A stretch of 64,000 nucleotides of DNA from Takakia lepidozioides (taxonomy: Eukaryota > Plantae > Bryophyta), in assembly GCA_030704615.1 (NCBI GenBank), contig JAKLZA010000356.1, forward strand, positions 4,905-68,904, written 5' to 3'. The notes beneath the pieces are model-generated. The model had not been told where the DNA came from and made no database searches. It saw only the letters and a program-made list of their open reading frames with translations. The first letter of the stretch is position 1; every line of letters starts with the position of its first letter. This document shows, piece after piece, positions 1,871 through 30,553 of the stretch. Both the position numbers and the translations under genes were made by a program.

Positions 1871-2726
1871 TGCCTAAGGACTGGCATGTGGTCTGGAAGG
1901 CCGAATTTTGAAGCTCGTGGAGGGCGGTTTGAGGAGTATCTTCATGATATTCCCATGGTCATGCAAGTGAGGGTAGAGAGGAGAGGCAGAGTGTTGGGAT
2001 GAGAGCATGCTGGGGTTAGGCATTGCTTTAGCTTCTCTTCCTCGTAGTTTCCACCCTCTCATTAGGCCAAGACCTTTCCGTAGGTGGAGGCAAGAGTCAG
2101 TCCGGGTTTGGGCTGGGGTGTCCTTGCAGGAGCAACACCGTGGAGTTGTTTTTGGTGTGGGGGAGTTGTCGATCTGATTTCTTGTGTTTGGATCCCCTCC
2201 ATACCTGCATGCTTGACTGTGCGCCATGCTAGTTTTGTGTGGGCGCTTGTTTTTATAGGTGATTGGTCCGGATTTGATCACCGGCCAGTCCTAGAGCATG
2301 CTGTCGATGGTGAGGCTGGGGTGATGACCAGCCAGACCATCATTGTTTCTCCTGTGGTGAGGTTGGAGGTGATGACCAGCCAACCATAGGAGTGCTTGCG
2401 GTGGATGCAGGTACAGGTGTAGGCTATGTTAGGAACTTAGTATTCCAAACCATAAGCCGCAACAGGTTCTCTACCCGGTTACCTTGTGGAGAGGGGGTTA
2501 GGGACATGTTCATGACCGGTTGAGTGTCAACACGGAGGTGCCACTAGTTGCTGGGGACAGTGCCGGTTCGAGCACTAGCGATACTAGTGGGTACACGAGA
2601 CGAGGTGTGCGGTTTAGGCCACCTTCACCTCCTGTGTCTTCTACGGAAGGTTCTGATTCGGATTGTGAATCAGGAGGACTCATACCGGCGGTGCAAGTTG
2701 TTTCTTTGCCATTGTTGTGGGACACA

Positions 2727-3952
2727 ATGGAGGAGATGTATGGAGCTACCAAGGGGCCACGAAGGTACTCTGGGGCGGTGGGCACCATCGAGTTGGATGA
2801 TTTTATCCAAGAGTTTGATAGTTGGTGTGATTTGCAGCAAATGCGCAATCCACAACTATTTACGCCTTTCATGGCATGGAAGGGCTGTTTCAGCACCTTG
2901 AGGGGCCGCCTATGGATGATTACCATGAGTTCAGGCGGGGGCATGAGGTTGAGATCGAGGAGTGGAGGATGTACTGGTCACCCGACTATGTCTCCATCAC
3001 TAGGGGCACTAGAGCCACGAGGGCAGTGGCTACACCTGCCGCTGCACCGGCAGCTTCAGCAAGCAGCAGTGGGACTGGTGGTACAGTAGCTACGACGTCC
3101 ACCCAAGCCACTACCGCACCAGCACTAGCACCCGTGCCTGCCTTCAACCCTGTTGTGGAGTTCTTCGAAGAGTTGAGAGGGAACTACCAAGGGGTGAGGA
3201 CAGAGAAGTTGCGGAGCTTGCAAGAGTTCCAACGGAAGCCGACCGAGAGCTTGAGGGAGGCTTTCACTCGCATGAGGCGCTTGATAAATGTAACCCAAGG
3301 GGTTACGGAAGCTCAGGCAGTCCAATTCTGGTATGGGATATTGGACAAGGAGCTGAGGAGAAGGGTGCGGGATGCAACTCTCCTACAAGCGGCCCAACCC
3401 ACCTTAGCAAATGTGTTTTTGCTGGCAGAGCGGATAGAGCTCAACATGGTGGAGGAACGAGTGGTCATGGTGGGATTTGCTAAGGAGACACCACGGGGTA
3501 GTGGTGCTCCTAGCCAACCACTACCTCAACGTGCTCAAGGCAACAAGGGGGCTCAGGTGAAGCTCAGGGAAGGGCAGAGAGGACCTCAGATGCAGGGGTC
3601 TCTCCCTTCATTTGCTGGCCAACAACGGGCGGATGTGGTGTGCTGGACATGTGGAGGACCCCATGTCAAGAAGGATTGTCCAGAGGGAGGCAAAGGGCCG
3701 GCACATGCACAGCCTGCACAGTTACAGTGTGGGCATTGTGGCAAACACGGGCATGGAGAGGCTCAGTGTTATGGTTTGCATCCTGAGTTGCGCCCAGGCC
3801 AGTTCCAAGGGAACAATGGTGGCCGGGGGCGAGGTGGAGCAGCCCAGAGGGACGAGGTGGCCAGCCACGAGGCCAAGGGCAAGCTCAACGTGGCCAAGGA
3901 CGCGGAGGTCAGGGTGTTGACCAAGGCATGGCCAACCGGCTTCAGCAGCTAG
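2727..3952 (+). CDS. gag: Gag of Gypsy copy A (frameshifted), two zinc knuckles
   Basis: FQRKPTESLREAFTRM (major-homology-like), CWTCGGPHVKKDC and CGHCGKHGHGEAQC; 1-bp shifts near 2880 and 3850. Confidence 0.85.
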
Positions 3953-5073
3953 AGCAGAGGCTCGCTGCCATGGCTACAGCTCAGGTGGTACCGGCTCTAA
4001 GGCCGGATGGTCCACCTCCTGCTCCTGAGGGAGGAGATATGGGAGGCATGGGATTCATGTGTGGAGCAGCACTACCACTAGTGCAGGTGGAGTCTGCTGC
4101 AGCCGTGACTCGAGGAGCAGCACGAGTTCCTGAGCCACGAGGTGCAGAGGTGGAGTTGGATCCACAGCGTGGGGAGGCAAGCCGTCAGGCTAGGCTTCCT
4201 CAGTCATTCACATTGGCGGAGACAGTGTCGACGCCATCCATGGCACCTAGTTCTCGCCCGACTGTTACCGAGGCGGAGGTTACTATGCCATTGGGGAGAG
4301 CTACACGGGTAGCACCACTACCTAGTGTTGCCAAGGCTACGGCAGCTAGTGTGCTGCTAGGAGCGGCCACATCTGTGTGCCAGGCTCCATTGTTCTCGGC
4401 TACCATGATTGCGACGCCGGGGGTAAGACCAGCTGAGGTGTTCAGGCTGGCAGCTACACTCTGTGAGAGTGGGGAGGTTACTTCATCTTCTGCGGAGATA
4501 GTGGGAGGTGTAGTGCCGGAGGGATCCTCGGATTTGAGGGTCAAGACTGCCACGGCGGCGCCATGGCAAGCTGCAGCTGCCAGGTTGATGGAGCTGCCAG
4601 CTAGGCCAGCCATTGAGCGCGCCATGGTGACACCTGGAGTTGTCATGTTAGACAACCAGGATGGCATTTTCTGTTTGAGTGGACCGGCAGGCAAGAGGTA
4701 CCGGCCACTGCGGGTCTTGTTGGACTCGGGAGCTCAGCCATTGATGCTGGGCAGAGCTGCTATTGCAGGCTTGGGCCTCACGGAGGCGGATATGGAGCCT
4801 TGTCCTTTCCAGATACAGACGTCTTTGGGAGGATCGGAGCAGGCTCGGGGCATGACACGGCGTGAGTTGGCTATCAGACTACGGCCGGATCACCCTACAG
4901 ATGGCTCAGTGATGCGAGCCAAGGCCATTGTGACAGACGCAGTCTCATACGATGTCCTGGTTGGTGGGGCAGTGTTGTACCCATGGGCTTCACCCTGGAT
5001 TTTTGGGAGGAGTCAGCTTCCTATAGGCCTGCATGGCAGTCAGGGGAGGGCCGGCGTGTGCAGCTCCCTGTGA
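3928..5073 (+). CDS. Linker plus retroviral-type aspartic protease
   Basis: VLLDSGAQ active site and YDVLVGG C-terminal motif. Confidence 0.85.
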   Translation: MANRLQQLEQRLAAMATAQVVPALRPDGPPPAPEGGDMGGMGFMCGAALPLVQVESAAAVTRGAARVPEPRGAEVELDPQRGEASRQARLPQSFTLAETVSTPSMAPSSRPTVTEAEVTMPLGRATRVAPLPSVAKATAASVLLGAATSVCQAPLFSATMIATPGVRPAEVFRLAATLCESGEVTSSSAEIVGGVVPEGSSDLRVKTATAAPWQAAAARLMELPARPAIERAMVTPGVVMLDNQDGIFCLSGPAGKRYRPLRVLLDSGAQPLMLGRAAIAGLGLTEADMEPCPFQIQTSLGGSEQARGMTRRELAIRLRPDHPTDGSVMRAKAIVTDAVSYDVLVGGAVLYPWASPWIFGRSQLPIGLHGSQGRAGVCSSL

Positions 5074-5233
5074 CGTTCATAGGAGGAGTTGCGGTTGCCC
5101 AGCGAGGCAAGATGCCGACACTAGCAGCATTCACAACGGCAGTGAGTTGGCCTAGAGAGTTGCTTGAGGGCAATGCTCATTCAGAGGATGTACCACCTCC
5201 GGGAGAGCAGGATGACATGTATGGTATGGCGGA

Positions 5234-6420
5234 TTGCCTACCATGGTTGCTCAGACTCCATTGTGGGGCACGAGCAAGGATTTGCAGCGGGATGCTGATC
5301 GACGGGTGCAACAAGCCTGGGTGGAGGCTTTTGTACCGTCAGGAGAGGAGGAGAGTGTGGGGATTGCACCAGGACCACCTCAATTGTCTCCATTGGACAC
5401 CACACCTATTGTGTGGCAGTATCCGGATGAAGGCATTTGTCTTCTGGACTTGTTTGGCGGGATCAGCACCGGATTGGCTGTTGTGTTACAGGCAGGTGTA
5501 CGAGTTCGGCATTACCTGTATGTGGAGAGGGATGAGACTGCACGACGCGTTTCACTTCGCCATGTTGCTCAGTTGGTGCAGCGGTACCCTGAGTTGTTGT
5601 CGGTATCTGCAATTCGTGGATATCAGCAGGCCTTGCCAGCAGACATTTCGTTGCTGGGGGCGCAGGATTTGGAGCGGGTTGGCTCCATTGATCTGGTAGT
5701 GGCAGGTTGGCCCTGCCAAGGGCATTCATCAGCCGGGCATGGCAATGGATTGCGAGACTCAAGGTCGGGTCTGTTTTGGGAGATGGTGCGGGTTTTGCGC
5801 CACTTGCAGCTTCATCAAGCTGTATCTCCAGCATACATCTTGGAGAATGTGCCACTGATGGGCGATTCTCGGGCCAGGGTGATGGCCAGTGTGCATCAAG
5901 TCCGGTCGTGGCTTGGGTCAGCAGTGTTGCTAGATGCAGCTACAGTGGGGTCACGAGCTCATCGTCCACGGCTATGGTGGACTAACTTGATGCCACCCGC
6001 ACTGCTCAAGCGTGCATTTGATGGGGTGCAGCGGCCAGCACATCTCACAGTGGATAACATTCTGGACACAGGGAGGCAGTCTCAGCGTGTGAGACACGAT
6101 GACTGTTCGCCTTTGGCAGTGGTCAACAAGGTGGGTCAACCACGGGCAGCATTACCTACACTGCTCAGCTTCCCAGGATCGCATGCTTTCCGGGATAGTG
6201 GACCTGGCCTCCTGTGGGATGCTCAGTTGCAGCAGGTAGTGGAGCTGACGAGCGTGAGCGGGCAATGGGTTTTACCACTGGTACCACGGCGGTGTCGTCT
6301 CTTTCTGAGGCATCACGTCGTCAAGTGTTGGGGCAAGCAATGGATCTCAATTGCTTGACCTGGATTATCAGCTTGGCTCTAGCTGAGCAACGCAGAGTGC
6401 GGAGTACACTTCCCTCAATG
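5234..6420 (+). CDS. C5 cytosine DNA methyltransferase domain (DNMT3-like) inside Gypsy copy A
   Basis: Motifs I LLDLFGGISTG, II YVERD, IV AGWPCQGHS, VI YILENV, VIII RAHRPRLWW, then IX ERERAMGF and X QVLGQAMD after a frameshift near 6245. Confidence 0.92.
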
Positions 6421-6675
6421 GTCTCTCTGCCTACCGAGACGGTTCAAGCAGTGAGTGGGGCGAGCATGTGAGGACCACGGGGTGCATGCATCCATGGCAC
6501 ACGTGGGAGGTGCTCGAGGGTTCAGAGGGAGTTGGCAGCCAAGGCGGCTGTGATAGATGAGGTTGGGGATTCTTCTCGGGTTGAGGAGGTCCTCAATGAT
6601 GAGATGATGGGGCAGGATGAGGTCTTGTCATTGACTGAGCAGGCAGGGAGTACTGCTCAAGAGGTTGCAGCATAG

Positions 6676-8276
6676 CAACCACGGGACGCGTTCTCTACCT
6701 CTAAGCCCACTGGACTTAAGGTTGTAGTTACGGAGGACAATTGGGAGCCTGACATTGGACCCATTGTCACCGGAGGAGAGAGACGACGTATACGGCGGTT
6801 CCTGAGGGCTTACAGGAATTGCTTTGCCTTCAGTTTGAAGGACTTGGGAGCACTGAAGGGTCAAGAGATCCGTATTGAGTTGGCCACTGACACGCCAATC
6901 TTTCGGAGACCCTATAGATACAGTGACATGGAGAGGTCTTTGATTCAGATGAGGACTCAAGATCTCTGGGAGGCAGGTTTGGTGGAGCTCTCTGGTGGAG
7001 AGTATGCTTCAGCCACAGTGATGCCAGCCAAGAAGGATGTCTATGGCAAGTGGACGGAGAGACGTATGTGCGGTGATTACCGGCCTGTAAATCGTCAGAC
7101 CAAGTCCGATAAGTATGCCATGCCAACACCAGAGGAGATCTTTGATGCCATCGGGCATGCTAAGGCCTTTAGCACTTTGGATTTACGATCCGGATATCAC
7201 CAGTTGCCAATCAAGGAGGCGGACAAGCAGAAGACGACATTCTGGGGGATCAATGAGCACGGCAAGGATTGCCTATATCAGTGGCGGTTCTTACCATTTG
7301 GGCTTAAGAATGCTCCTGCAGAGTTTCAGAGAGTCATGGATAGGATTCTAGCAGGGGTGGACTTTGCTCGGTGCTACATAGATGACATCATCATCTTTAG
7401 TGTTACGATGGAGGAGCATGAGAGACACCTTCAGATGGTATTGGAGCGCTTGAGAGCGCACGGATTGAAGTTGCATCCGGGGAAGTGCAAGTTTTTCCAC
7501 AACCAGATTGAGTATCTGGGTCACATGATATATCCTGGAGGATTGGGGGTACAGCAAACTAAGGTAGAGGCCATTGCACAAATTCCACGCCCCACGGATG
7601 TGAGCCGAGTTCGAGCTTTCATGGGGTTGGCAAACTATTATAGACGGTTTGTCAAGGGATTTAGTACCATTGCAAAGGCTCTAACCAAGCTGACCAAGGT
7701 GGACCAGGAGTGGCAGTGGGAAGATGAGCAGGAACGAGCTTTTCAAGAGCTCAAGGCGAGGTTGACCTCGGCGCCTATCTTGAGACGACCTATCAGGGGG
7801 CGTCCTTTCAGCTGCATACGGATTGGAGCATGCTGGGGCTTGGAGCGGTGCTCACACAGGTGGATGATGAGGGAAGAGAGTTCGTAGTGGCTTACGCTAG
7901 CCGCTCGAACAACGCTGCAGAGGCTAAGTACAGCTCATATGAGGGAGAGTGCTTAGCTGTAGTGTGGGCCGTGGCACACTTCAGGTGCTATCTATACGGC
8001 AATCTTTTCACCCTTGTCACGGATCACCAGCCACTCAAGTGGTTGATGGAGTCAGACAAGCTTACGGGGAAGCTTGCACGGTGGGCACTTATACTCCAGG
8101 AGTATGACTTTCAGGTTGTGCATCGACCGGGTTTGGTCAATCGGGATGCGGATGGATTGAGTCGCAATCCATGCATGAGCCAGCAGGATGACACTGGAGC
8201 TCGGTGGCATGGGGAGACGGACGAGGAGATGGTGCCGGGATGGCACGCATCTGCATTTTTGTGTATCTTGGCATAG
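6676..8276 (+). CDS. pol: Reverse transcriptase and RNase H, Gypsy copy A (frameshifted)
   Basis: RMCGDYRPVN, LDLRSGYHQ, LPFGLKNAP, YIDD; RNase H AYASRS, TDHQPL, ADGLSR. Confidence 0.95.
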
Positions 8277-8303
8277 GGAGGTCAGATTGGACCTACAATA
8301 GGG

Positions 8304-9806
8304 ATGACTGTAGACGGAGTGTCTGAGGACCCTGAGGCTAGTGATGAGCTAGGTGGTGCCAGAGATATACATGAGGATTCGGCTGTGTTGGACTACCTCC
8401 GCACGGGAGACACGGCAGCCATTGTGACTGCCAGGGAGAGGGATCGGATCCTGCAACGAGCCAAGAGGTTCAATGGGAGGGGATACACCTACTTCGAGTG
8501 TGGGAGAATGGTCGGGTGAGGATTGTGCCTCACCCCACACAGCGTGCACGGTTAGTGCGGCATGCCCATGAGGAGTTGGGGCATTTTGGAGTGCGACGCA
8601 CTCACAGTTTACTGCAGGGGCAGTATTGGTGGCGTGGTATGCATACAGAGGTGCGACAGTTCGTGGCTAGGTGCATGGTGTGTGACAGGGTGCGTGCTTC
8701 ATTCAACGCCCCTACACCACAGTTGCATCCTTTACCAATCATGGGATTGGGCTACAGGTGGAGTCTTGACTTCGCAGGACCGTTGCCACTGACTATGCGC
8801 CACCACAATATGTGTTGGTGATGGTGGAGCACTTCTCCAAGTGGATTGAGTTGGTTCCATTGCCTGACAAGGCTAGTGAGGGGGCTGCGTATGCATTCTT
8901 GGATCGTGTGCTTAGCCGATTTGGTGCTCCAGCTGAGGTACTCACGGACCAAGGGAGAGAGTTTTTGGGGGAGTTTCAGGCTTTGTGTGATAAAGCCTTG
9001 ATAGACCACCGCACCACTTCTCGGGATCATCCTGAGGCCGATGGCTTAGCAGAGAGAGTTGTTCAGACGGTGAAGAGGGGTTTGCGCAAGTATGGCTTGC
9101 AGAAGGACACCTAGGAGATTGGGATCTTCAGGTTCCTTGGTTAGCCATGGGCTAAAGGTTCAGCAAACAAGCATCACTTGCCTCCTTCTCACCATATTTC
9201 CTTCTCTTTGGCCGAGAGCCGGATTTGCCTGCAGCCATTCGTAGGGACACTGCTCAAGTCCTTAACCTTGACGATCCGGACGTGTGGGTACGTGCATGTG
9301 ATCAGCGTGCAGAGTTGTTCAAGAAAGTCATGCCCATGGCTTTTGAGAACCTTGCCATTGCACAGCACCGTGATACGTTGAGGTATGCCACTATACGTGG
9401 TGGAGGATATCGTCCTGGGGTTCGGAGGTTTAGCCCTGGTGACTATGTTTATTTGCAGCAGACTGCTCCTACGACTCTGGATGTTACTGCAGGGCGTGTT
9501 ATTCTGAGGGTTCGAGAGGTGTTGCCCTCAGGGGTCCTGATCTTGGAGGGTCGGGATGGCATGACTTGGAAGGACCATGTGCGTAATTGTGCGCCATGTC
9601 ACCTTCCCAATGTCGATGGCAGAGTTGACCCAAACTTGGCAGTGGTACCTGCAGGTTTGAGGTGCATGCTTTGTGGGTCTGCCAAAGGGGCAGCCACCAT
9701 GCTGGTGTGTGATCGATGCTCAAGGGGTTGGCATATGGGATGCTTGACACCACCTCTTGAGAAGGTTCCTGACGGAGATTGGTTGTGTCCACACTGCTTG
9801 GGATAG
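8304..9806 (+). CDS. Integrase with C-terminal PHD finger, Gypsy copy A (frameshifted)
   Basis: HEELGH..CMVC zinc motif; SLDFAGP / TDQGREF / GLAER DDE triad; CMLC..CDRC..H..C..CPHC (C4HC3). Confidence 0.92.
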
Positions 9807-10066: not shown

Positions 10067-10254
10067 TGTGTGGACTAGTGACTGCCATAGTGGGCAGCAT
10101 AATGGCAGCCTAGTGACTGACTAGTTGTAGCCTAGTGGTTGGACTAGTGGCTGGACTAGTGGTGGACTAGTAGTATACTAGTGTGTGGTGTGCACATGTG
10201 TTGTGTGGTTTTGGACAGCGATGTAGTTGTGTAGCGATATGTATGCGCACGACA
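10067..10254 (+). repeat. Truncated 3' LTR (first 188 bp)
   Basis: Nearly identical to the start of the full LTR at 29848; breaks after GCACGACA. Confidence 0.9.
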
Positions 10255-12377
10255 CCTTTCTTCTGCAACCATAGAACCAAATCCCCCGTCTTAAAAGTTT
10301 TTAACTTGCCTTCATCAAACTGTTCCTTTCGCTTCATCTGAATTTTGGTCATATTATCAGCTGCATCAGCACGTACTTCTTCCACATGGTATAATTCATG
10401 TTTCCTGACCTTGATGGAGTCTTGCAATTCTATTCTTTTTCCCCACTCCGTTCTCATGGTAGGTAACAGGAATTCCACTGGAAGTAAGGCTTCCATACCA
10501 TAAACTAATTGGAATGGTGTATACTTAGTGGTGACTTTATATGAAGTCCTGTTTGACCACAAAGCTGTCAGCAGCTTTGTATCCCAATCCGTTCTGTTTG
10601 CATTGACTATCTTAGCCAAGATAGTACATAGTATTTTGTTGGTAGCCTCTGCCTGCCCATTACCCTGTGGGTAATATGTTGTACTCTTTCTATGCACAAT
10701 CATAAACTCTTTAGTCAACAACTCAATGGTCTCATTCATGAAGTGACTTCCCTGATCACTGATAAATTCTAAGGGACAGCCAAATCGTGTAAGTATGTTC
10801 TCGTACAGGAACCTTGCTGTGGACTTGGCTGTGTTGTCCCTCAAAGCTTTAGCTTCCACCCACTTTGTAGTATAATCAGTGGCTGTAATTATGTACCTGT
10901 TTCGTGTATTTTTGGATGGTGGGTTAATTGGTCCAACAAAGTCTAGTCCCCATTTCTGAAATGGTTCCGTAGGCATTGTAGGATGCAAGGCCATCCTTCC
11001 AGATCTCTGCAAAGGTCCTAGCCTCTGACATTCATCACACTTCTGACAATACTCGTGTACATCTTTGAACAAAGTAGGCCACCAGTATCCTGCGAGTAGT
11101 ATCTTTCTACTGGTAGTCTCTTCTCCAAAATGACCTCCAGCCACTCCTTTATGAACTTCCGCCAAAACTTTATTTACTTCATGGTGGTACAAGCATCGTT
11201 TTAGTACTCCATCAGGTCTTAACTTATACATTCTGCTTCCTACCATAGTATAAGGTAAAGCTTTGATAGCGATTCTCTTCCTCTGCTCCTTACCATAACT
11301 AGGTGGGCACTGACCATGAGCAAGGTAGTATCTGATTGGCCACTGCCAATCTAACCAGTCATCTGCACTTCCCTGCACCTCCACTGCAAAGAGACTCGCA
11401 TCTGGTAATTGATCATCTATTCCTGTGGCTGGTTCTCCTGTTGACAATCGTGACAAATGATCCGCCACAAGATGCAGTCTCCCAGGCTTGTAAACAACCT
11501 CGAACTCAAACTCGTGCAAGATTATCAACCATCTTGCTATTCTTCCGCTTATCAAAGGTTGTTTACCAGGTATATCAGAGCCTGGTGATCCACATAGAAC
11601 ATAAACTTCTTGCCCAACAGGTAATGCCTGAATTTCTTCACTGCATAGATCATTGCCATCTTTCTGTTGTGCTATAGTTCCTTTCAGCACTGTTCATCAA
11701 CCGGCTAGCATAGTACACACGTGAATCTATATTCCCTGTAACATTCTGGGCTAACACCGCTCCCAACGCTTCTCCTGATGCATCGCAGTGAACATGGAAT
11801 ACTACATGCCAGTGAGGGTTAATCAGCACAGGTGTAGTTGTTACTGACAGTGTAAGTTCCTCAAATGTCTGTTGACATTCAGCTGTCCAGGCAAACACTG
11901 CATCTTTCTTCAGTAGTTTGCTCAATGGTGCTGCTATTTGTGCATACCTTTTGACAAATCTCCTGTAATAACTGGTTTGCCCAAGGAATCTCCGTAGACT
12001 TTTAACATTCACTGGTGGTGGAGAGGCTTTAATGGACTCTGTCTTTCTGGGATCCACAAGGAGTCCCTTCTTACACACAATGTGTCCCAGAAGCACCCCT
12101 GAGTTCACACAGAAAGTACACTTCTCTGGATTCAGGCCCAGACCTCTCATCCTGCATCTGGCCAAACATAACTCCAATTTATGCAAGTGCTCACTCTTAG
12201 AGCTGTACACACTGAAATCATCCAAGAATACCTGCATGAAATCATCCAGATACTCATGAAAAGATTCACTTATCACTCTCTGAAAGGTCGCTGGTGCATT
12301 ACAAAGTCCAAAGGGCATGACTTTGTATGCATAAGCCCCCCAGTCTGTGATGAAAGCTGTTTTCCCTTGGTCTTCTT
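10255..12377 (-). mobile_element. Internal fragment of a second Gypsy family (partial RT-RH-IN), copy A
   Basis: MPFGLCNAP, FLDDF, HCDASG, GGHF..CQKCDEC, WGLDFVGP, ISDQGSHF, GQAE; truncated at both ends. Confidence 0.92.
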
Positions 12378-12756
12378 CTAGGGGTTGAGACTTGACCCTA
12401 TGTTTGTGAGTGCCTTGAGCGCATGCTTGCCCATAGTGAGCAAGATTTTTGTCGCTAAACAAGGAGAAGCAAACATAAAAAAGCTTACGGTTGGAGCGAA
12501 AAGTGCCTCATTCTTCAATTAGAGAACCTTATCTCGTGAGGGCGGGAGTCCTTGCATAAGACATAATAGTCTTATAGCATCCCTTTAGGCACGATAGGCG
12601 CACTTTGTATGCATTTGTCTTGGTTTCCATTGCATTTGTATTTGGGTCCTAACCGGCCCCCCTTAAAATTTACTGTGTCTTTTTCCAGTATTTTTTTTAC
12701 TTTTTGTTACCTTTGCAAGCCTTTGTTGACCACCCTAAACCCTAAACTCTTTTTCC

Positions 12757-13809
12757 ATGGCGGAACTAGCAGGTAACAAACGTCCATGTCCTAGCTTAGG
12801 CGTCGGCCCTTCTCATGCATCCGCGTCTTCTTCTTCTAGCATGGATATCTCCATTCCTCCCCCTTTGCTTGCATTTGTGCATACATCGGTCAAGGAATTC
12901 AAAAGTCTTAGGCATGAGCATGAAAAGACTTCCAAGTACCTTCAGAAATTGCAAGTGCAATTCGAAGAAGGCACCATACCCAACTCCCTTAGAATGAGTC
13001 CTCCTAAACTTCAAATAGGAGATCCCGAGGCCCAATCCGTCCTTGATGCGAGCCTGGCCGAATGCACAACCGCATATCGGATCAAGTGCTTTGAAGCACT
13101 CATCAAAGCCCAAGAATCTCGACTTGCTAGCTTGACCCACAAGCTCGAGCAATCGAAACCGGTCTTTGAGACTCGCCTCTCGGATTTGATTTCGCCTTTA
13201 CGATCCTTAAATTTGATAGGTGACAAGTCTAAGTCTTCCATCGAGTCGTGGCATCTTCATCTTAGCAATCTCTTTGTTACTCATGTAGATGCATTTCTCA
13301 TTCACAAACAACTTTCCGACGTCAGCAAGGCCGCGGCTATCGCCGCTCGCAACGTTGCTCGGGAAGGTGCTATGGAAGAAGCGGAGACCCTCCCTGTGGA
13401 ACCGTCCATTGCTACCCTCGTGAAACGCGAGGTGGTCAAGGAAGTACTCAAGGAGGTGAAGAAGGTGGTGAATTCCATCCAGGTGAAACCTAAGGCCCAG
13501 AAGCTTGGGACCAAACCGGCTAGTAAGCCTAAGGCGAATCCTGGCGGAAAGTCGGGAAACGGCAAGCAGCAGAAAGGTATCCGGGTCTCCACCCGTTCTG
13601 CTGCGTCACCTACCTCTTTCAACAAGAGGTCAGGCCCGAACCGCACAACCGGTTCTGGTACGGGAGGCCGAAAACCTTCAGCGAGGGTCAACGGAAAACC
13701 GGCCACGACGAAGGGTGTGACGACGACGACGACGAAGACGAAGCGGCCATACGTACCTCCTCACAGACGCGGGGGCGCACGAGGAGTCTCTTCTGGTACC
13801 CGCTCGTAG
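12757..13809 (+). CDS. PLE ORF1: coiled-coil protein with basic C-terminal tail
   Basis: 350-aa ATG ORF conserved in PLE1, PLE4 and PLE5; heptad-like helical segments and a K/R-rich tail. Confidence 0.8.
   Translation: MAELAGNKRPCPSLGVGPSHASASSSSSMDISIPPPLLAFVHTSVKEFKSLRHEHEKTSKYLQKLQVQFEEGTIPNSLRMSPPKLQIGDPEAQSVLDASLAECTTAYRIKCFEALIKAQESRLASLTHKLEQSKPVFETRLSDLISPLRSLNLIGDKSKSSIESWHLHLSNLFVTHVDAFLIHKQLSDVSKAAAIAARNVAREGAMEEAETLPVEPSIATLVKREVVKEVLKEVKKVVNSIQVKPKAQKLGTKPASKPKANPGGKSGNGKQQKGIRVSTRSAASPTSFNKRSGPNRTTGSGTGGRKPSARVNGKPATTKGVTTTTTKTKRPYVPPHRRGGARGVSSGTRS
13554..13615 (+). promoter_or_regulatory. -1 programmed ribosomal frameshift signal (G GGA AAC plus pseudoknot)
   Basis: Heptamer in ORF1 phase; stems 13566-74/13596-604, 13582-86/13591-95 and 13575-79/13611-15; -1 frame open from 13533 to 15665. 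Confidence 0.8.
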
Positions 13810-15665
13810 ACCCGAAGGCTTACGCTTTGTTGCTCTTTGCTAGGAAGACTCCCTCCCAAGTGGAATGCAGGGTCACCAACACTGCTATCCACAACTATAG
13901 CAAGAGGGTTCTCTCCTTTGCGGAGCGACAACTCCTGGGCCTTGGTCTCAATTACATTCCTCGTCCTCTTCCCCCTTCCCGATCTTCAATCATCACCGAA
14001 TTCAACAATTTTGCTCGAAGCTTGAGGTTGCGAACGTCCTTCTCCGGCAAAGACAACGACGAGGTTCCTCTTTGGCGCGTTCCGAATCCATCATTCAATC
14101 CGCCAGTGGAATCTCAACCGCTCGAGGCCATCATTCGAGAAGGTAATGATCTTTTGTCTAGCCGTTTGGATCGAATCGCCCGCAATGCACGACCTTGTCT
14201 GCCGAGACACTTGAGACTTGCTCTCAAAAGATTGAGGTCGGATCCGGACCTTGTCATCAAGCCGGCCGACAAAAATCTTGGTCTTGTGCTTATGGACAAG
14301 TCTTGGCACATGCAAGAGGCGATGCGGCAACTCTCAGACACCGAAGTTTATCGTCCCGTGGATTCCGTACCGTGGGAAGAACTTTGGTCGAGGTTGGAGG
14401 TGCTGGCTTGCCATCCAATCTACAGGTTTGCGATCTCCACCAAAGAATGGAATTACATCCGCCAACGCCCTCGGTCGTCCACGGACTTTCGAGCTTGTGC
14501 TTTGTACTTCATTCCGAAGGTGCACAAACCCGTGCTTGTTGGAAGACCCATTTGTTCCTACAACGACTACATCTTCGAGCATGCTTCAATTTGGCTCCAT
14601 CACCAACTCCTTCCGGTACTTCTCAAGGAACCCACTCATTTGGTTGATTCTCTCACGCTTCTTCGAGAGGTTTCCCAACTCGAGGTCCCCTCGCATGCTC
14701 TTCTTTTTACGTTTGACGTGGAATCTCTATATCCCAGCATCATCACCGAGCTCGGCTTGTATGAGCTCGAATGTGCTATTGGAGGTAATTTCACCAAACA
14801 CAAAAAAGACCTGATCATGACCCTCGCTGGATTAGTCTTGAAACACCATTACCTTGAGTTCAATGGTAGTTTTTGGCACCAAATTCGCGGGACGGCCATG
14901 GGGAGCAACTTTGCAGTTGTTTACGCTTGTTTGTTCCTCTGTCGGTTGGAGATGTACATGGAGTACGTGTGCCCATCGGAGCAAGAGCTGCTTTATCTTA
15001 AGCGCTATATCGACGACGGCTTTGGCATCTGGGTAGGCTCCGAAAAGAGCCTCCGGTCCTGGTTACGGAACTACGGTTCCATGTTCGATGGCATCAAAAT
15101 CACGACCGCCATAAGCGCGACGTCCGCCGACATCTTGGATATCACCTTCCTCAAAGGAGACGACTTCATCCAAACTCGACGGCTCTCTACGAGATGTCAT
15201 CAAAAGGCCCAGAACAAGTATCAATACTTGCCTTGGTCCTCGTGGCATCCACATCACCAAAAGAAAGCTTTCGTCATCGGCGAGCTCCAACGGTACGTAA
15301 TACGAGAAAGCACCATCCAAGGGTTCAACCATTTGCGACTTTTGTTTTACAAACGTCTTCGAGCCCGAGGTTATCCGGCGGCGTTCATCCGGAGTTGCTT
15401 CACCAAGATCTCCTACGACCTCAGATCCGCTCTACTCGACCAACAGACGCAACGCGCAGTTGAGGGTAAACGGGCCCCCCTTGTTCTTAAGCTCGACTAC
15501 TCTTCGTACACTCGAGCCTTGAACTTGGGGGCCACCCTAAACCCTAGACTCCACGAGTTGCTTCAGCAAGTCCCGGAGCTTCGGTTTCTTCCTCGAGCGA
15601 TGATTTGTTGGAGGAATCCGCGAAAGCTGAGTTCATTCCTAGTTAAATCTAGAATGATAGGATGA
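13560..15665 (+). CDS. PLE ORF2 reverse transcriptase (no endonuclease), probably fused to ORF1 by frameshift
   Basis: IKPADKNLG, YFIPKVHK..GRPI, TFDVESLYPSI, GTAMGSNFA, RYIDDG, SSWHP..RGYP; no ATG near the start of the frame. Confidence 0.93.
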   Translation, partial: RQAAERYPGLHPFCCVTYLFQQEVRPEPHNRFWYGRPKTFSEGQRKTGHDEGCDDDDDEDEAAIRTSSQTRGRTRSLFWYPLVDPKAYALLLFARKTPSQVECRVTNTAIHNYSKRVLSFAERQLLGLGLNYIPRPLPPSRSSIITEFNNFARSLRLRTSFSGKDNDEVPLWRVPNPSFNPPVESQPLEAIIREGNDLLSSRLDRIARNARPCLPRHLRLALKRLRSDPDLVIKPADKNLGLVLMDKSWHMQEAMRQLSDTEVYRPVDSVPWEELWSRLEVLACHPIYRFAISTKEWNYIRQRPRSSTDFRACALYFIPKVHKPVLVGRPICSYNDYIFEHASIWLHHQLLPVLLKEPTHLVDSLTLLREVSQLEVPSHALLFTFDVESLYPSIITELGLYELECAIGGNFTKHKKDLIMTLAGLVLKHHYLEFNGSFWHQIRGTAMGSNFAVVYACLFLCRLEMYMEYVCPSEQELLYLKRYIDDGFGIWVGSEKSLRSWLRNYGSMFDGIKITTAISATSADILDITFLKGDDFIQTRRLSTRCHQKAQNKYQYLPWSSWHPHHQKKAFVIGELQRYVIRESTIQGFNHLRLLFYKRLRARGYPAAFIRSCFTKISYDLRSALLDQQTQRAVEGKRAPLVLKLDYSSYTRALNLGATLNPRLHELLQQVPELRFLPRAMICWRNPRKLSSFLVKSRMIG

Positions 15666-15837: not shown

Positions 15838-15883
15838 ATCCCATATCGTTTGCACATAGTGAGGGTGCTTTTCTAGTATATAA
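15838..15883 (+). promoter_or_regulatory. Candidate plant snRNA-type promoter (USE + TATA) in the PLE 3' UTR
   Basis: ATCCCATATCG (10/11 match to RTCCCACATCG) at 15838-48; TATATAA at 15877-83. Same motif at 19379, 36145 and 53977. Confidence 0.55.
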
Positions 15884-15915
15884 GGATAGGCTTGGCTCTT
15901 AGGACTTCATCTCTT

Positions 15916-15971
15916 GGTGTTCCACTGATGAGCTTGAGCAATCAAGCGAAACTTGTTTGGAATAAAACACC
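15916..15971 (+). ncRNA. Type I hammerhead ribozyme (PLE1)
   Basis: TTCCA-CTGATGA-GCTTGA(GCAA)TCAAGC-GAAA-C-TT-GT-T-TGGAA; predicted cleavage after 15957. Confidence 0.9.
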
Positions 15972-16787
15972 TTAACTCTTTTTGTGTCTCCACATTTAGA
16001 GAAGTCGAGAGTCTAGTCCTTGCCCGCCCGGGCAACTTGGATCGAAGGGGTGCTCGGCTCCGAGGGGAATCCCAACCCTTGGATACTTCCGAGGCCTTTT
16101 TTCTTTCCAAAGCACGGGCGTATAGAGCCTTCCGTTTGACGCCATCTTAGCCACCGCTTACAATGGGGAAGGCGGCTGGGGGTATATGGTAATCGTGTCG
16201 GGCAAGCTAATTTAGCCCCGACTACACGGTTCCCCCTGTCGTACGCCCGATGGTCGGAGAGAAGGGATTTGGTTGATCCTCCCTCGAGTTCATCTCGAGC
16301 GATCAGAGGACTATGGGCATGCGCAAGCCTCTGCCGACCTAACCTTCTCGTCGATGACCTTATGCGGTAATCCCTCCCATTCTTCCTTAGAGGTACGAAC
16401 CTCTTTTTGAAGGTGGGGCATATAAGTTTTCCAACTAGGGGTTGAGACTTGACCCTATGTTTGTGAGTGCCTTGAGCGCATGCTTGCCCATAGTGAGCAA
16501 GATTTTTGTCGCTAAACAAGGAGAAGCAAACATAAAAAAGCTTACGGTTGGAACGAAAGTGCCTCATTCTTCAATTAGAGAACCTTATCTCGTGAGGGCG
16601 GGAGTCCTTGCATAAGACATAATAGTCTTATTGCATCCCTTTAGGCACGATAGGCGCACTTTGTATGCATTTGTCTTGGTTTCCATTGCATTTGTATTTG
16701 GGTCCGAACCGGCCCCCCTTAATTTTTACTGTGTCTTTTTCCAGTATTTTTCTATTTTTTGTTACATTTGCAAGCCTTTGCTAACAA

Positions 16788-16932
16788 CCCTAAACCCTAA
16801 ACCCTAAACTTGTTTGCCCGGATCGTGTTTATCTTGCACCCGGTGCATCCGCGTTGTACTACTACACTTGTTTTGACGCTTTATGTAAACCCTAAACCCT
16901 AAACCCTAAACCTTAAACCCCTAAACCCTAAA
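16788..16932 (+). repeat. Two CCCTAAA telomeric arrays separated by a ~77-bp spacer (end of PLE1)
   Basis: Visible repeats, including CCTTAAA/CCCCTAAA variants; same structure at ~20328-20466. Confidence 0.92.
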
Positions 16933-16934
16933 CT

Positions 16935-19900
16935 TGTGGAACCGTCCATTGCTACCCTCGTGAAACGCGAGGTGGTCAAGGAAGTACTCAAGGAGGTGAA
17001 GAAGGTGGTGAATTCCATCCAGGTGAAACCTAAGGCCCAGAAGCTTGGGACCAAACCGGCTAGTAAGCCTAAGGCGAATCCTGGCGGAAAGTCGGGAAAC
17101 GGCAAGCAGCAGAAAGGTATCCGGGTCTCCACCCGTTCTGCTGCGTCACCTACCTCTTTCAACAAGAGGTCAGGCCCGAACCGCACAACCGGTTCTGGTA
17201 CGGGAGGCCGAAAACCTTCAGCGAGGGTCAACGGAAAACCGGCCACGACGAAGGGTGTGACGACGACGACGACGAAGACGAAGCGGCCATACGTACCTCC
17301 TCACAGACGCGGGGCGCACGAGGAGTCTCTTCTGGTACCCGCTCGTAGACCCGAAGGCTTACGCTTTGTTGCTCTTTGCTAGGAAGACTCCCTCCCAAGT
17401 GGAATGCAGGGTCACCAACACTGCTATCCACAACTATAGCAAGAGGGTTCTCTCCTTTGCGGAGCGACAACTCCTGGGCCTTGGTCTCAATTACATTCCT
17501 CGTCCTCTTCCCCCTTCCCGATCTTCAATCATCACCGAATTCAACAATTTTTGCTCGAAGCTTGAGGTTGCGAACGTCCTTCTCCGGCAAAGACAACGAC
17601 GAGGTTCCTCTTTGGCGCGTTCCGAATCCATCATTCAATCCGCCAGTGGAATCTCAACCGCTCGAGGCCATCATTCGAGAAGGTAATGATCTTTTGTCTA
17701 GCCGTTTGGATCGAATCGCCCGCAATGCACGACCTTGTCTGCCGAGACACTTGAGACTTGCTCTCAAAAGATTGAGGTCGGATCCGGACCTTGTCATCAA
17801 GCCGGCCGACAAAAATCTTGGTCTTGTGCTTATGGACAAGTCTTGGTACATGCAAGAGGCGATGCGGCAACTCTCAGACACCGAAGTTTATCGTCCCGTG
17901 GATTCCGTACCGTGGGAAGAACTTTGGTCGAGGTTGGAGGTGCTGGCTTGCCATCCAATCTACAGGTTTGCGATCTCCACCAAAGAATGGAATTACATCC
18001 GCCAACGCCCTCGGTCGTCCACGGACTTTCGAGCTTGTGCTTTGTACTTCATTCCGAAGGTGCACAAACCCGTGCTTGTTGGAAGACCCATTTGTTCCTA
18101 CAAGAACTACATCTTCGAGCATGCTTCAATTTGGCTCCATCACCAACTCCTTCCGGTACTTCTCAAGGAACCCACTCATTTGGTTGATTCTCTCACGCTT
18201 CTTCGAGAGGTTTCCCAACTCGAGGTCCCCTCGCATGCTCTTCTTTTTACGTTTGACGTGGAATCTCTATATCCCAGCATCATCACCGAGCTCGGCTTGT
18301 ATGAGCTCGAATGTGCTATTGGAGGTAATTTCACCAAACACAAAAAAGACCTGATCATGACCCTCGCTGGATTAGTCTTGAAACACCATTACCTTGAGTT
18401 CAATGGTAGTTTTTGGCACCAAATTCGCGGGACGGCCATGGGGAGCAACTTTGCAGTTGTTTACGCTTGTTTGTTCCTCTGTCGGTTGGAGATGTACATG
18501 GAGTACGTGTGCCCATCGGAGCAAGAGCTGCTTTATCTTAAGCGCTATATCGACGACGGCTTTGGCATCTGGGTAGGCTCCGAAAAGAGCCTCCGGTCGT
18601 GGTTACGGAACTACGGTTCCATGTTCGATGGCATCAAAATCACGACCGCCATAAGCGCGACGTCCGCCGACATCTTGGATATCACCTTCCTCAAAGGAGA
18701 CGACTTCATCCAAACTCGACGGCTCTCTACGAGATGTCATCAAAAGGCCCAGAACAAGTATCAATACTTGCCTTGGTCCTCGTGGCATCCACATCACCAA
18801 AAGAAAGCTTTCGTCATCGGCGAGCTCCAACGGTACGTAATACGAGAAAGCACCATCCAAGGGTTCAACCATTTGCGACTTTTGTTTTACAAACGTCTTC
18901 GAGCCCGAGGTTATCCGGCGGCGTTCATCCGGAGTTGCTTCACCAAGATCTCCTACGACCTCAGATCCGCTCTACTCGACCAACAGACGCAACGCGCAGT
19001 TGAGGGTAAACGGGCCCCCCTTGTTCTTAAGCTCGACTACTCTTCGTACACTCGAGCCTTGAACTTGGGGGCCACCCTAAACCCTAGACTCCACGAGTTG
19101 CTTCAGCAAGTCCCGGAGCTTCGGTTTCTTCCTCGAGCGATGATTTGTTGGAGGAATCCGCGAAAGCTGAGTTCATTCCTAGTTAAATCTAGAATGATAG
19201 GATGATTTTGTAGTGCAAATGTCCCTAGCATTATTAATTTTGCCTCTTTGATAGCCCTAGTGTTGATGTTAAAGTCAAAGGGTTCCAACAATTTAATTTG
19301 GACCATTGACTAATTAATGCAGTCTTGACTTGGAGGCTAAATTAGTGCTTTAGTGGCATTATTATTGCCTTGGGAATTATCCCATATCGTTTGCACATAG
19401 TGAGGGTGCTTTTCTAGTATATAAGGATAGGCTTGGCTCTTAGGACTTCATCTCTTGGTGTTCCACTGATGAGCTTGAGCAATCAAGCGAAACTTGTTTG
19501 GAATAAAACACCTTAACTCTTTTTGTGTCTCCACATTTAGAGAAGTCGAGAGTCTAGTCCTTGCCCGCCCGGGCAACTTGGATCGAAGGGGTGCTCGGCT
19601 CCGAGGGGAATCCCAACCCTTGGATACTTCCGAGGCCTTTTTTCTTTCCAAAGCACGGGCGTATAGAGCCTTCCGTTTGACGCCATCTTAGCCATCGCTT
19701 ACAATGGGGAAGGCGGCTGGGGGTATATGGTAATCGTGTCGGGCAAGCTAATTTAGCCCCGACTACACGGTTCCCCCTGTCGTACGCCCGATGGTCGGAG
19801 AGAAGGGATTTGGTTGATCCTCCCTCGAGTTCATCTCGAGCGATCAGAGGACTATGGGCATGCGCAAGCCTCTGCCGACCTAACCTTCTCGTCGATGACC

Positions 19901-20468
19901 TTATGCGGTAATCCCTCCCATTCTTCCTTAGAGGTACGAACCTCTTTTTGAAGGTGGGGCATATAAGTTTTCCAACTAGGGGTTGAGACTTGACCCTATG
20001 TTTGTGAGTGCCTTGAGCGCATGCTTGCCCATAGTGAGCAAGATTTTTGTCGCTAAACAAGGAGAAGCAAACATAAAAAAGCTTACGGTTGGAACGAAAG
20101 TGCCTCATTCTTCAATTAGAGAACCTTATCTCGTGAGGGCGGGAGTCCTTGCATAAGACATAATAGTCTTATTGCATCCCTTTAGGCACGATAGGCGCAC
20201 TTTGTATGCATTTGTCTTGGTTTCCATTGCATTTGTATTTGGGTCCGAACCGGCCCCCCTTAATTTTTACTGTGTCTTTTTCCAGTATTTTTTTACTTTT
20301 TGTTACCTTTGCAAGCCTTTGCTAACAACCCTAAACCCTAAACCCTAAACTTGTTTGCCCGGATCGTGTTTATCTTGCACCCGGTGCATCCGCGTTGTAC
20401 TGCTACACTTGTTTTGACGCTTTATGTAAACCCTAAACCCTAAACCTTAAACCCCTAAACCCTAAACT
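16935..20468 (+). mobile_element. PLE2: 5'-truncated within ORF1, head-to-tail after PLE1
   Basis: Starts at TGTGGAACCG inside ORF1; RT to 19205 with 1-bp indels; full 3' UTR and telomeric arrays. Confidence 0.92.
19457..19512 (+). ncRNA. Type I hammerhead ribozyme (PLE2)
   Basis: Identical to 15916-15971. Confidence 0.9.
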
Positions 20469-22674
20469 TGTGGAACCGTCCATTGCTACCCTCGTGAAAC
20501 GCGAGGTGGTCAAGGAAGTACTCAAGGAGGTGAAGAAGGTGGTGAATTCCATCCAGGTGAAACCTAAGGCCCAGAAGCTTGGGACCAAACCGGCTAGTAA
20601 GCCTAAGGCGAATCCTGGCGGAAAGTCGGGAAACGGCAAGCAGCAGAAAGGTATCCGGGTCTCCACCCGTTCTGCTGCGTCACCTACCTCTTTCAACAAG
20701 AGGTCAGGCCCGAACCGCACAACCGGTTCTGGTACGGGAGGCCGAAAACCTTCAGCGAGGGTCAACGGAAAACCGGCCACGACGAAGGGTGTGACGACGA
20801 CGACGACGAAGACGAAGCGGCCATACGTACCTCCTCACAGACGCGGGGGCGCACGAGGAGTCTCTTCTGGTACCCGCTCGTAGACCCGAAGGCTTACGCT
20901 TTGTTGCTCTTTGCTAGGAAGACTCCCTCCCAAGTGGAATGCAGGGTCACCAACACTGCTATCCACAACTATAGCAAGAGGGTTCTCTCCTTTGCGGAGC
21001 GACAACTCCTGGGCCTTGGTCTCAATTACATTCCTCGTCCTCTTCCCCCTTCCCGATCTTCAATCATCACCGAATTCAACAATTTTGCTCGAAGCTTGAG
21101 GTTGCGAACGTCCTTCTCCGGCAAAGACAACGACGAGGTTCCTCTTTGGCGCGTTCCGAATCCATCATTCAATCCGCCAGTGGAATCTCAACCGCTCGAG
21201 GCCATCATTCGAGAAGGTAATGATCTTTTGTCTAGCCGTTTGGATCGAATCGCCCGCAATGCACGACCTTGTCTGCCGAGACACTTGAGACTTGCTCTCA
21301 AAAGATTGAGGTCGGATCCGGACCTTGTCATCAAGCCGGCCGACAAAAATCTTGGTCTTGTGCTTATGGACAAGTCTTGGTACATGCAAGAGGCGATGCG
21401 GCAACTCTCAGACACCGAAGTTTATCGTCCCGTGGATTCCGTACCGTGGGAAGAACTTTGGTCGAGGTTGGAGGTGCTGGCTTGCCATCCAATCTACAGG
21501 TTTGCGATCTCCACCAAAGAATGGAATTACATCCGCCAACGCCCTCGGTCGTCCACGGACTTTCGAGCTTGTGCTTTGTACTTCATTCCGAAGGTGCACA
21601 AACCCGTGCTTGTTGGAAGACCCATTTGTTCCTACAAGAACTACATCTTCGAGCATGCTTCAATTTGGCTCCATCACCAACTCCTTCCGGTACTTCTCAA
21701 GGAACCCACTCATTTGGTTGATTCTCTCACGCTTCTTCGAGAGGTTTCCCAACTCGAGGTCCCCTCGCATGCTCTTCTTTTACGTTTGACGTGGAATCTC
21801 TATATCCCAGCATCATCACCGAGCTCGGCTTGTATGAGCTCGAATGTGCTATTGGAGGTAATTTCACCAAACACAAAAAAGACCTGATCATGACCCTCGC
21901 TGGATTAGTCTTGAAACACCATTACCTTGAGTTCAATGGTAGTTTTTGGCACCAAATTCGCGGGACGGCCATGGGGAGCAACTTTGCAGTTGTTTACGCT
22001 TGTTTGTTCCTCTGTCGGTTGGAGATGTACATGGAGTACGTGTGCCCATCGGAGCAAGAGCTGCTTTATCTTAAGCGCTATATCGACGACGGCTTTGGCA
22101 TCTGGGTAGGCTCCGAAAAGAGCCTCCGGTCGTGGTTACGGAACTACGGTTCCATGTTCGATGGCATCAAAATCACGACCGCCATAAGCGCGACGTCCGC
22201 CGACATCTTGGATATCACCTTCCTCAAAGGAGACGACTTCATCCAAACTCGACGGCTCTCTACGAGATGTCATCAAAAGGCCCAGAACAAGTATCAATAC
22301 TTGCCTTGGTCCTCGTGGCATCCACATCACCAAAAGAAAGCTTTCGTCATCGGCGAGCTCCAACGGTACGTAATACGAGAAAGCACCATCCAAGGGTTCA
22401 ACCATTTGCGACTTTTGTTTTACAAACGTCTTCGAGCCCGAGGTTATCCGGCGGCGTTCATCCGGAGTTGCTTCACCAAGATCTCCTACGACCTCAGATC
22501 CGCTCTACTCGACCAACAGACGCAACGCGCAGTTGAGGGTAAACGGGCCCCCCTTGTTCTTAAGCTCGACTACTCTTCGTACACTCGAGCCTTGAACTTG
22601 GGGGCCACCCTAAACCCTAGACTCCACGAGTTGCTTCAGCAAGTCCCGGAGCTTCGGTTTCTTCCTCGAGCGAT
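20469..22674 (+). mobile_element. PLE3: same 5' truncation as PLE2, 3'-truncated near the end of RT
   Basis: RT stops at ...CGAGCGAT and joins directly to Gypsy gag sequence. Confidence 0.92.
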
Positions 22675-29847: not shown

Positions 29848-30364
29848 TGTGTGGACTAGTGACTGCCATAGTGGGCAGCATAGTGGCAGCCTAGTGACTG
29901 ACTAGTTGTAGCCTAGTGGTTGGACTAGTGGCTGGACTAGTGGTGGACTAGTAGTATACTAGTGTGTGGTGTGCACATGTGTTGTGTGGTTTTGGACAGC
30001 GATGTAGTTGTGTAGCGATATGTATGCGCACGACAGCTGTCAAGTTATTTTACCACTAGTGTGAAACTAGCTAGGAAATAGCTAGCTTTTACATATTGAC
30101 ATTTGGGATTGGCCCAAGTGTCAATCCAGGGGTCAAGGCAGATTTAGGCCCTGGAGTGGTTATCTTCACGGCAAGCGCATGAGGCTCATCTTTCTCGAGT
30201 TGAGCCTCACCGCGCCTAGCTATGGCGCCGTAGTGTGGATTCCCCATGGCGTGGGGTGCACTTGGCTTGACTTGTATTTGAGTGATGAGGTTATATATGC
30301 ATGAGTTTATGCTTCAGCTTTGTGAGCTCGCATGAGCTTGTGCTTGTATCCTTCTTCTTTATCA
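29848..30364 (+). repeat. Complete 517-bp LTR (TG...CA)
   Basis: Follows the purine tract; begins TGTGTGG, ends TTTATCA; TATATAT near 30292. Confidence 0.85.
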
Positions 30365-30365
30365 T

Positions 30366-30553
30366 TGTGTGGACTAGTGACTGCCATAGTGGGCAGCATA
30401 ATGGCAGCCTAGTGACTGACTAGTTGTAGCCTAGTGGTTGGACTAGTGGCTGGACTAGTGGTGGACTAGTAGTATACTAGTGTGTGGTGTGCACATGTGT
30501 TGTGTCGTTTTGGACAGCGATGTAGTTGTGTAGCGATATGTATGCGCACGACA
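30366..30553 (+). repeat. Second, truncated LTR copy (188 bp)
   Basis: Same breakpoint as 10067-10254. Confidence 0.9.

Follow-up and report, generated by a model that had tools for sequence, protein, structure and literature searches.

The cassette lies within a 64-kb window, by which the whole stretch of DNA analysed (64,000 nt) is meant; all features described here are on the forward strand. It is part of a Penelope-like element (PLE) with two ORFs located in different frames. ORF1 (12757–13809) encodes 350 aa and is followed by a 612-aa ORF for a Penelope-type reverse transcriptase (RT; 13827–15665), which lacks a GIY-YIG endonuclease. Downstream of the RT, a leader/tail region extends from the predicted ribozyme cut to an internal telomere-like tract (15958–16787) and constitutes the 5´ UTR of the downstream unit in tandem arrays; the equivalent leaders in relatives measure 150–480 nt. 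Three C-strand telomere-type repeat units (16788–16808) close the tail of the element. The full-length copy is preceded by a partial upstream leader (12378–12746), a pseudo-LTR remnant that is 96.5% identical to 16435–16802 and contains neither promoter nor ribozyme. This remnant includes a two-unit telomere-like tract (12733–12746), and the ATG of ORF1 follows 10 nt later. A short tract about 10 nt before the ORF1 ATG is also found in four related families (L002, L006, L007 and L008), and this shared placement indicates that the tract belongs to the element. The ATG is only 10 nt past the tract, which leaves no space for a separate ORF1 promoter.

The RT ORF contains PLE RT motifs and has 154 relatives with E values down to 1e-225, which carry PF28514, PF26215 and PF00078. 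The best relatives are plant proteins (Cryptomeria, Selaginella and Ginkgo), and Closterium is also represented. GIY-YIG (PF01541) is confined to distant RT matches of at most 30% identity. A Pfam scan of ORF1 and the RT ORF gave no match, even at an E value of 10. The RT motifs and relatives bear out the Penelope-like identity that a preliminary description of this DNA had assigned to the carrier element. Element tails end in telomere repeats at 16788–16808 and 20329–20349, and 5´-truncated copies begin at 16935 and 20469, directly after the repeat tracts. LTR and Mutator-like insertions suggest that the array is internalised or subtelomeric. Judged by its sequence anatomy (ORF1, frameshift, RT and telomere-repeat tails), the host is an endonuclease-less, telomere-attaching PLE and as such an ordinary addition to a known class. 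ORF1, the frameshift and a PLE-type RT without GIY-YIG are likewise present in the endonuclease-deficient PLEs of the Athena and Coprina clades and of Selaginella, and reverse-complement telomere-repeat tails, head-to-tail chains and a hammerhead in the terminal repeats are also shared (PMC8557442, PMC4209133, PMC6431247). Two differences were observed. In rotifer PLEs, the telomere repeats stand immediately past the hammerhead, whereas a leader of 0.15–0.83 kb lies between them here. For the Selaginella hammerheads, a canonical form with a complete helix III is described, in contrast to the 2-bp helix III of this element.

The cassette opens with a USE-like element, ATCCCATATCG (15838–15848), which matches the plant consensus RTCCCACATCG (10.1101/2025.01.12.632625) at 10 of 11 positions. 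The single mismatch is a C-to-T change inside the CCCACAT core, scored against a general plant consensus that may not be that of the host. A TATA box, TATATAA (15877–15883), is located 28 nt past the USE-like 11-mer and 48 nt before the CUGA box of the ribozyme; with TATAAGG taken as the box, the gap between USE and TATA becomes 30 nt. The TATA box is followed by an Inr-like TTCATC (15906–15911), in which A15909, located 32 nt past the first TATA-box T, is the predicted start. A type-I hammerhead (15916–15971) begins with helix I 33 nt after the TATA box and has a predicted cut at 15957/15958. A T5 run (15979–15983) starts 21 nt after this cut. The USE-like motif, the TATATAA 28 nt downstream, the hammerhead about 33 nt past the TATA box and the TTTTT at 15979–15983 were thus all found where the preliminary description had placed them.

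Four copies of the cassette, starting at 15838, 19379, 36145 and 53977, are present in the 64-kb window, as had been claimed. Copy 2 (19379–19524) is identical to copy 1. Copy 3 (36145–36290) has the core CUGGUGA and a U-to-C change in helix I, and a Mutator-like insertion begins 57 nt downstream of it. Copy 4 (53977–54122) carries the same helix I change. Only 2 of 161 positions vary, namely the core A-to-G change in copy 3 and the helix I U-to-C change in copies 3 and 4. This agreement is uninformative on selection because the whole elements that carry the four cassettes are about 99% identical. The USE-like 11-mer alone is also within chance, with approximately 0.7–1 such match expected in 64 kb. 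It is through comparison with relatives, at the level of sequence, that the cassette rises above chance.

The hammerhead has the core of a type-I ribozyme (CUGANGA ... GAAA, a cut after UH, and helices I and II). The 5´ strand of helix I (15916–15924) leads into the CUGAUGA box (15925–15931). Helix II (15932–15947) is a 6-bp stem capped by a GCAA (GNRA) loop and is followed by GAA at 15948–15950. Helix III consists of AC/GU with a UU loop, H17 is U15957, and the cut is predicted at 15957|15958; the 3´ strand of helix I (15958–15971) contains a 5-nt bulge. No hammerhead was detected in the window by Rfam at the gathering threshold, and the best permissive match was to Hammerhead_3 (19.6 bits versus a gathering score of 48.5). 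The Rfam models cover PLE variants with a minimal helix III poorly and are insensitive on the relatives as well. The ribozymes of the relatives were located by pattern searches and alignments. Across 14 relatives, the pairs of helices I and II are kept through compensatory double changes.

In all relatives, helix III forms a perfect palindrome of 6 nt (ACUAGU, ACAUGU, AUGCAU or ACCGGU), which corresponds to the known dimer design of PLE hammerheads (PMC4209133). The ACUUGU of this element is the only non-palindrome, and a self-dimer would hold two U-U mismatches. Two base pairs closed by a 2-nt loop are unable to form in the monomer; folding without helix III gives -14.9 kcal/mol, compared with -15.7 kcal/mol for the minimum free energy (MFE) fold. 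The window contains no hammerhead with a complementary ACAAGU helix III. An earlier suggestion that the ribozyme pairs in trans to rescue its short stem III agrees with the palindromic helix III of the relatives; ACUUGU itself lacks self-complementarity. RNAalifold on extended regions revealed no outer clamp of helix I. A pairing between UCAUC and GAUGA was considered as a conserved switch and rejected, as families with a CUGAAGA core keep UCAUC.

Related loci were gathered by exact protein look-up and by one metagenome scan with RT alignment. The comparison covered 15 families with a hammerhead after the RT, which represent seven deep lineages with a between-lineage RT identity of 38–57%. A sixteenth hammerhead-bearing family, L010, was added later. 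Two loci, L008 and L089, end before the ribozyme position, and no hammerhead was found after the RT in the Selaginella locus L001. The 15 families were aligned over a region reaching 120 nt upstream and 110 nt downstream of the CUGA box. Conservation in this region is limited to the TATA box and the ribozyme core, and the other non-coding DNA is unalignable. The T-A-T-A and the next A are invariant or nearly so, and the full TATATAA occurs in 8 of the 15 families; in these loci, TATAWAW has a background of 5.6e-4 per nt. The preliminary description had made its proposal depend on conservation of the motif in related PLEs, and the TATA box is kept in every related lineage examined. Non-plant relatives have no such TATA box.

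The distance from the TATA box to the CUGA box divides the families into two groups. In group A (this element, L002, L005/7, L006 and L011/20), the distance is 47–53 nt. In group B (L010/25, L013, L014, L016, L017/24, L018 and L023), it is 37–38 nt. An Inr-like TCA, with its A 29–33 nt after the first T of the TATA box, is present in six of the seven group A families. Group B has a TGTA with its A at 23–26 nt after the TATA box, which is likely the counterpart of the group A TCA. From the conserved position of the TCA, transcription is predicted to begin near 15909, only a few bases short of helix I. This predicted site falls inside the range of 15905–15910 in which a start had been expected. 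The motifs, their conservation and their geometry are direct observations.

The USE-like motif is less widely distributed than the TATA box. The 15 families were searched for TCCCACATCG with at most two mismatches and a gap of 15–35 nt from the TATA box, and matches were found in four: this element (28 nt), L005, L011 and L020 (each 22 nt). L005 carries a second USE-like copy at a 4-nt gap. At a background of 4.4e-4 per position, approximately 0.14 matches are expected over the 15 families. This element was left out of the statistic because it had prompted the test; among the six other lineages, the motif is present in two, both at the 22-nt gap, with a binomial estimate of about 1e-3. The block GAATTRTCCCATA is common to this element and L002, where the gap is 29 nt, and L014 has TCCCACATCC farther upstream of its TATA box. 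In group B, CT-rich or (CT)n DNA is found where the USE would stand. By these sequence matches, the USE-like motif is recurrent and commoner than chance, yet absent from half of the related families. Its presumed conservation in relatives is accordingly borne out as a recurrence at a fixed 22-nt gap in some lineages, and it is not universal. In plant and moss snRNA promoters, the spacing between USE and TATA is 23–25 nt for Pol III and 32–34 nt for Pol II (PMC8287931; 10.1101/2023.10.25.562971), and the 28-nt spacing of this element fits neither class.

T-runs downstream of the ribozyme are also enriched. A run of at least four T within 65 nt of the cut is present in 14 of 15 families, compared with a control fraction of 0.44. 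A run of at least five T within 85 nt is present in 10 of 15 families and in six of seven lineages (control fraction 0.19), with both thresholds picked after the data had been seen. The distance of the run from the ribozyme varies from 5 to 156 nt across the families, and L016 has a T6 inside loop II. An Rfam scan of the window detected no snRNA gene, and inspection by eye revealed no plant snRNA 3´ box after the ribozyme.

Several known systems resemble the cassette in part. The type-3 promoters of plants (snRNA, U6 and telomerase RNA) have a USE-like 11-mer, a TATA box, a start about 30 nt later and a downstream T-run, as here (PMC8287931); they differ in that the cassette has a C-to-T change in CCCACAT, a 28-nt spacing between the two classes and a USE-like motif that half of the related families lack. 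Newt satellite 2 is a tandem hammerhead repeat with an snRNA-type Pol II promoter within the repeat (Coats et al., 1994, cited in PMC2220036), and repeats of this type are now viewed as PLE-dependent retrozymes (10.64898/2026.07.22.740005). Satellite 2 is an animal, non-coding 330-bp repeat with snRNA promoter elements of the vertebrate type; the element here comes from a plant, has coding capacity and carries a USE-like motif of the plant type, the spacing of which is non-canonical. In the Nicotiana benthamiana retrozyme NbRZ1, the LTR promoter starts upstream of the hammerhead, and self-cutting of the primary transcript removes the cap (PMC9695139). Plant LTR retrozymes are unlike this element in being non-coding and Gypsy-mobilised, with type III hammerheads and without telomere repeats. 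Among PLEs, transcription of Penelope of D. virilis and of Chlamys-3_cRei starts in an upstream partial tandem copy or pseudo-LTR, as proposed here (PMC2377424, PMC8557442). The Penelope promoter is internal, TATA-less and overlaps an intron; the cassette has a strict TATA box and an Inr-like motif and shows no evident intron. A TATA or USE module ahead of the ribozyme was not found described for endonuclease-deficient PLEs in the searchable literature.

HeT-A offers a parallel of another kind. It is a telomere-specific element that forms head-to-tail arrays, and a promoter at its 3´ end transcribes the downstream neighbour, an arrangement for which Danilevskaya et al. reportedly used the words 'promoting in tandem' in 1997. 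HeT-A is a non-LTR (LINE-type) element with a poly(A) tail and has neither a ribozyme nor a TATA/USE module. The likeness is one of way of working, not of family membership.

With modest confidence, we favour the reading that the cassette is the promoter–ribozyme module of the PLE pseudo-LTR and that it transcribes the downstream unit in a HeT-A-like manner. This was one of two options in the preliminary description, and it fits the anatomy best, the agreement being one of geometry. The TATA box and the Inr-like TCA, joined in this lineage by the USE-like element, would start transcription at about 15909, just before the hammerhead. The transcript would pass the ribozyme, the 0.83-kb leader and the short telomere-like tract and continue into ORF1 and the RT of the downstream unit, and the 3´ end of one unit would in this way drive its downstream neighbour, as in HeT-A and PLE pseudo-LTRs. 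Alone, the hammerhead is unable to close its 2-bp helix III, and its relatives have a dimerising build. It may trim a capped 5´ piece of about 50 nt, or it may separate units in read-through RNA. From the sequences we infer a working promoter, its start site, its polymerase and cleavage in vivo.

This reading of a 3´ promoter for the downstream unit is consistent with the architecture of the related elements. No other conserved promoter element was seen between the RT stop and the next ORF1. In the compact relative L007, only about 430 nt separate the RT stop from the next ORF1 ATG, and they comprise, in order, about 165 nt, the TATA box, 47 nt, the ribozyme, a leader of about 150 nt, the telomere-like tract and 10 nt before the ATG. 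L002, L003 and L007 assemble as closed cycles, which correspond to head-to-tail arrays or circles. Tandem units are present in the window itself and provide the geometry of a promoter facing its neighbour. The full-length copies in the window carry 203–370 nt of upstream leader, which indicates that the template RNAs begin well upstream of ORF1. The start sites of Penelope and Chlamys are likewise within the pseudo-LTR (PMC8557442). For the long RNA, Pol II is more likely than Pol III, given the many T-runs of the leader and the retention of TATA box and ribozyme in group B despite its lack of a USE; group A may yield a short Pol III product besides.

Certain observations oppose the favoured reading. 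The leader contains T5 and T6 runs, and the USE spacing of 28 nt leaves the polymerase ambiguous. Cutting right past the start would strip the cap from the element's own mRNA. No copy in the window begins at the predicted start or at the cut site, and the full-length copies here have no intact upstream module. In addition, insertion of a lizard PLE in vitro needs no hammerhead cleavage, with no reads that ended at the cut site (PMC11167929), and Penelope, the one PLE whose promoter has been characterised, has an internal promoter without a TATA box (PMC2377424).

The other option of the preliminary description, which we consider rather unlikely, is an snRNA-type Pol III gene that produces a ribozyme RNA of about 75 nt from approximately 15909 to the T5 run (15979–15983). 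This small RNA would pair via helix III with the hammerheads in long transcripts and provide the second half of a dimer. The USE-like motif with its 10/11 match to the plant consensus is compatible with such a gene, as are the TCCCACAT motifs of L005 and L011/L020, which are placed exactly 22 nt from the TATA box and thus near the Pol III spacing of 23–25 nt. The excess of T-runs (10 of 15 families with at least five T in the 85 nt after the cut, control 0.19) would supply terminators, although their distances of 5–156 nt and the post hoc thresholds weaken this argument, and the T6 in loop II of L016 would stop Pol III within the ribozyme. Precedent comes from a schistosome hammerhead repeat, which has a Pol III promoter (cited in PMC2220036). 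Conversely, the spacing of 28 nt in this element and 29 nt in L002 belongs to neither polymerase class, and group B retains the TATA box and the ribozyme while CT-rich DNA replaces the USE. The palindromic helix III of all relatives implies that a partner is needed, but ACUUGU lacks self-complementarity and has no ACAAGU partner within the window. Finally, ORF1 and the RT would still require another promoter, and no other conserved one was seen.

In a further, distinctly improbable scheme, a dual-use SNAPc-type promoter is combined with a dimer-only ribozyme. Here, a Pol III RNA of 75–120 nt reaching to the T-run would act as the trans partner that switches on the cutting of long Pol II transcripts. 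The resulting unit RNA, with 5´-OH and cyclic-phosphate ends, would be ligated into a circle of about 3.5–3.9 kb, the telomere overhang would prime on its internal telomere-like tract, and rolling-circle reverse transcription would generate head-to-tail arrays. If this scheme were true, chromosome ends would be extended by an autonomous 'retrozyme' with coding capacity.

It is very improbable that the TATAAA-like block is instead a near-upstream poly(A) signal, which would end the ORF1–RT mRNA about 200 nt past the RT stop and make the USE-like motif incidental. The block does lie 165–210 nt downstream of the RT stop in all families, and ATAAAA or TATAAA, similar to plant poly(A) signals, is found in several variants. 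However, the invariant T-A-T-A and the TATATAA of 8 of the 15 families represent the TATA-box consensus and not AAUAAA, the distance of the block is fixed to the downstream ribozyme and not to the RT stop, and an Inr-like TCA follows at the canonical 29–33 nt. Genomic copies also run through the ribozyme and the leader to the telomere-like tract, which argues that template RNAs are not ended here. Hardly probable at all is a role of the conserved upstream blocks as RNA, in RT binding or as a ribozyme accessory in read-through RNA, instead of as a DNA promoter: the RNA of a PLE is recognised by its RT through 3´ regions (PMC11167929), an upstream TTGTA and a downstream TACAA could clamp helix I in some families, and UCAUC at 15907–15911 can pair with the core GAUGA in the MFE fold of this element, but the TATA and TCA blocks have no covarying partner, the pairing is not conserved in the CUGAAGA-core families that still have UCAUC, RNAalifold found no structure beyond helices I and II, and in both identity and spacing the motifs correspond to a core promoter.

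The favoured reading of a promoter–ribozyme module that serves the downstream unit touches two open questions, the role of hammerheads in PLEs and the transcription of telomere-attaching PLEs that lack an endonuclease. In the searchable literature, the hammerhead of plant endonuclease-less PLEs was nowhere found described as preceded by a conserved TATA/Inr-like module and a recurrent USE-like motif. The conserved TATA/Inr-like core before the ribozyme gives a testable start at about 15909 and a defined 5´ product from 15958. The module also lets one ask whether the ribozyme serves to remove the cap or to define unit ends, or whether it depends on a partner. The recurrent USE-like motif, the T-runs and the precedent of newt satellite 2 suggest that snRNA-type promoters are possibly old companions of PLE hammerheads.

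The helix III hexamer of the window hammerhead (ACUUGU, 15951-15956) is the sole non-palindromic hexamer among 16 related families, and differs from ACUAGU by one base. ACUUGU would form a perfect pairing with no partner but ACAAGU, and the window contains no such partner. A stretch of approximately 80 nt (16802-16884 and 16921-16940) that has no relation to the element is flanked by the three telomere-type units of the tail and a longer telomere-type tract. The stretch starts with CTTGTTTG and therefore has AAACTTGTTTG in common with the hammerhead at 15949-59, a match to the helix III region that may be a coincidence. CTTGTG forms the join to the truncated copy at 16935.

The leader, which lies between the ribozyme cut and the internal telomere-like tract, carries on its minus strand an ATG ORF of 184 aa (16013-16567) that recurs in other copies. 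No Pfam family matches this antisense ORF, which is probably spurious. Within the RT coding region, all copies contain a two-unit telomere-like stretch with a single mismatch (15535-15548; also at 19075, 22608, 35842 and 53674).

Other mobile sequences adjoin or interrupt the leaders. At 12378, the truncated leader borders on LTR-retrotransposon sequence with an integrase (10167-12462, minus strand; 2520-9806, plus strand). A duplicate of the 10-16 kb block, 99.7% identical, lies at 30364-36346. In the third copy of the element, a Mutator-like insertion (36347-49901) breaks the leader 57 nt past the T-run. The insertion contains a 53-nt tandem array (41378-42116) and a 95-nt tandem array (46512-47367).

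Short repeats also occur next to the predicted promoter in related Penelope-like elements. In locus L005, the TCCCACATTG motif is found twice in tandem, 18 nt apart, upstream of the TATA (3507-3534), and locus L007 has a short tandem repeat with a unit of approximately 22 nt at the equivalent place (2740-2790). Motifs in this upstream part of the predicted promoter seem to duplicate readily.

The units at 16935-20468 and 20469-22674 are adjacent, are truncated at the same 5´ position (corresponding to 13395) and have an identical junction structure, which points to one tandem duplication and not to two separate insertion events. The contigs of the related loci L002 and L003 (from Logan) and L007 (from ENA) are circularly permuted and overlap at their ends by 30 and 115 nt, so that their units of approximately 3.9 and 3.75 kb assemble as closed cycles. 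Such assemblies would represent perfect head-to-tail arrays or else molecules that are circular.
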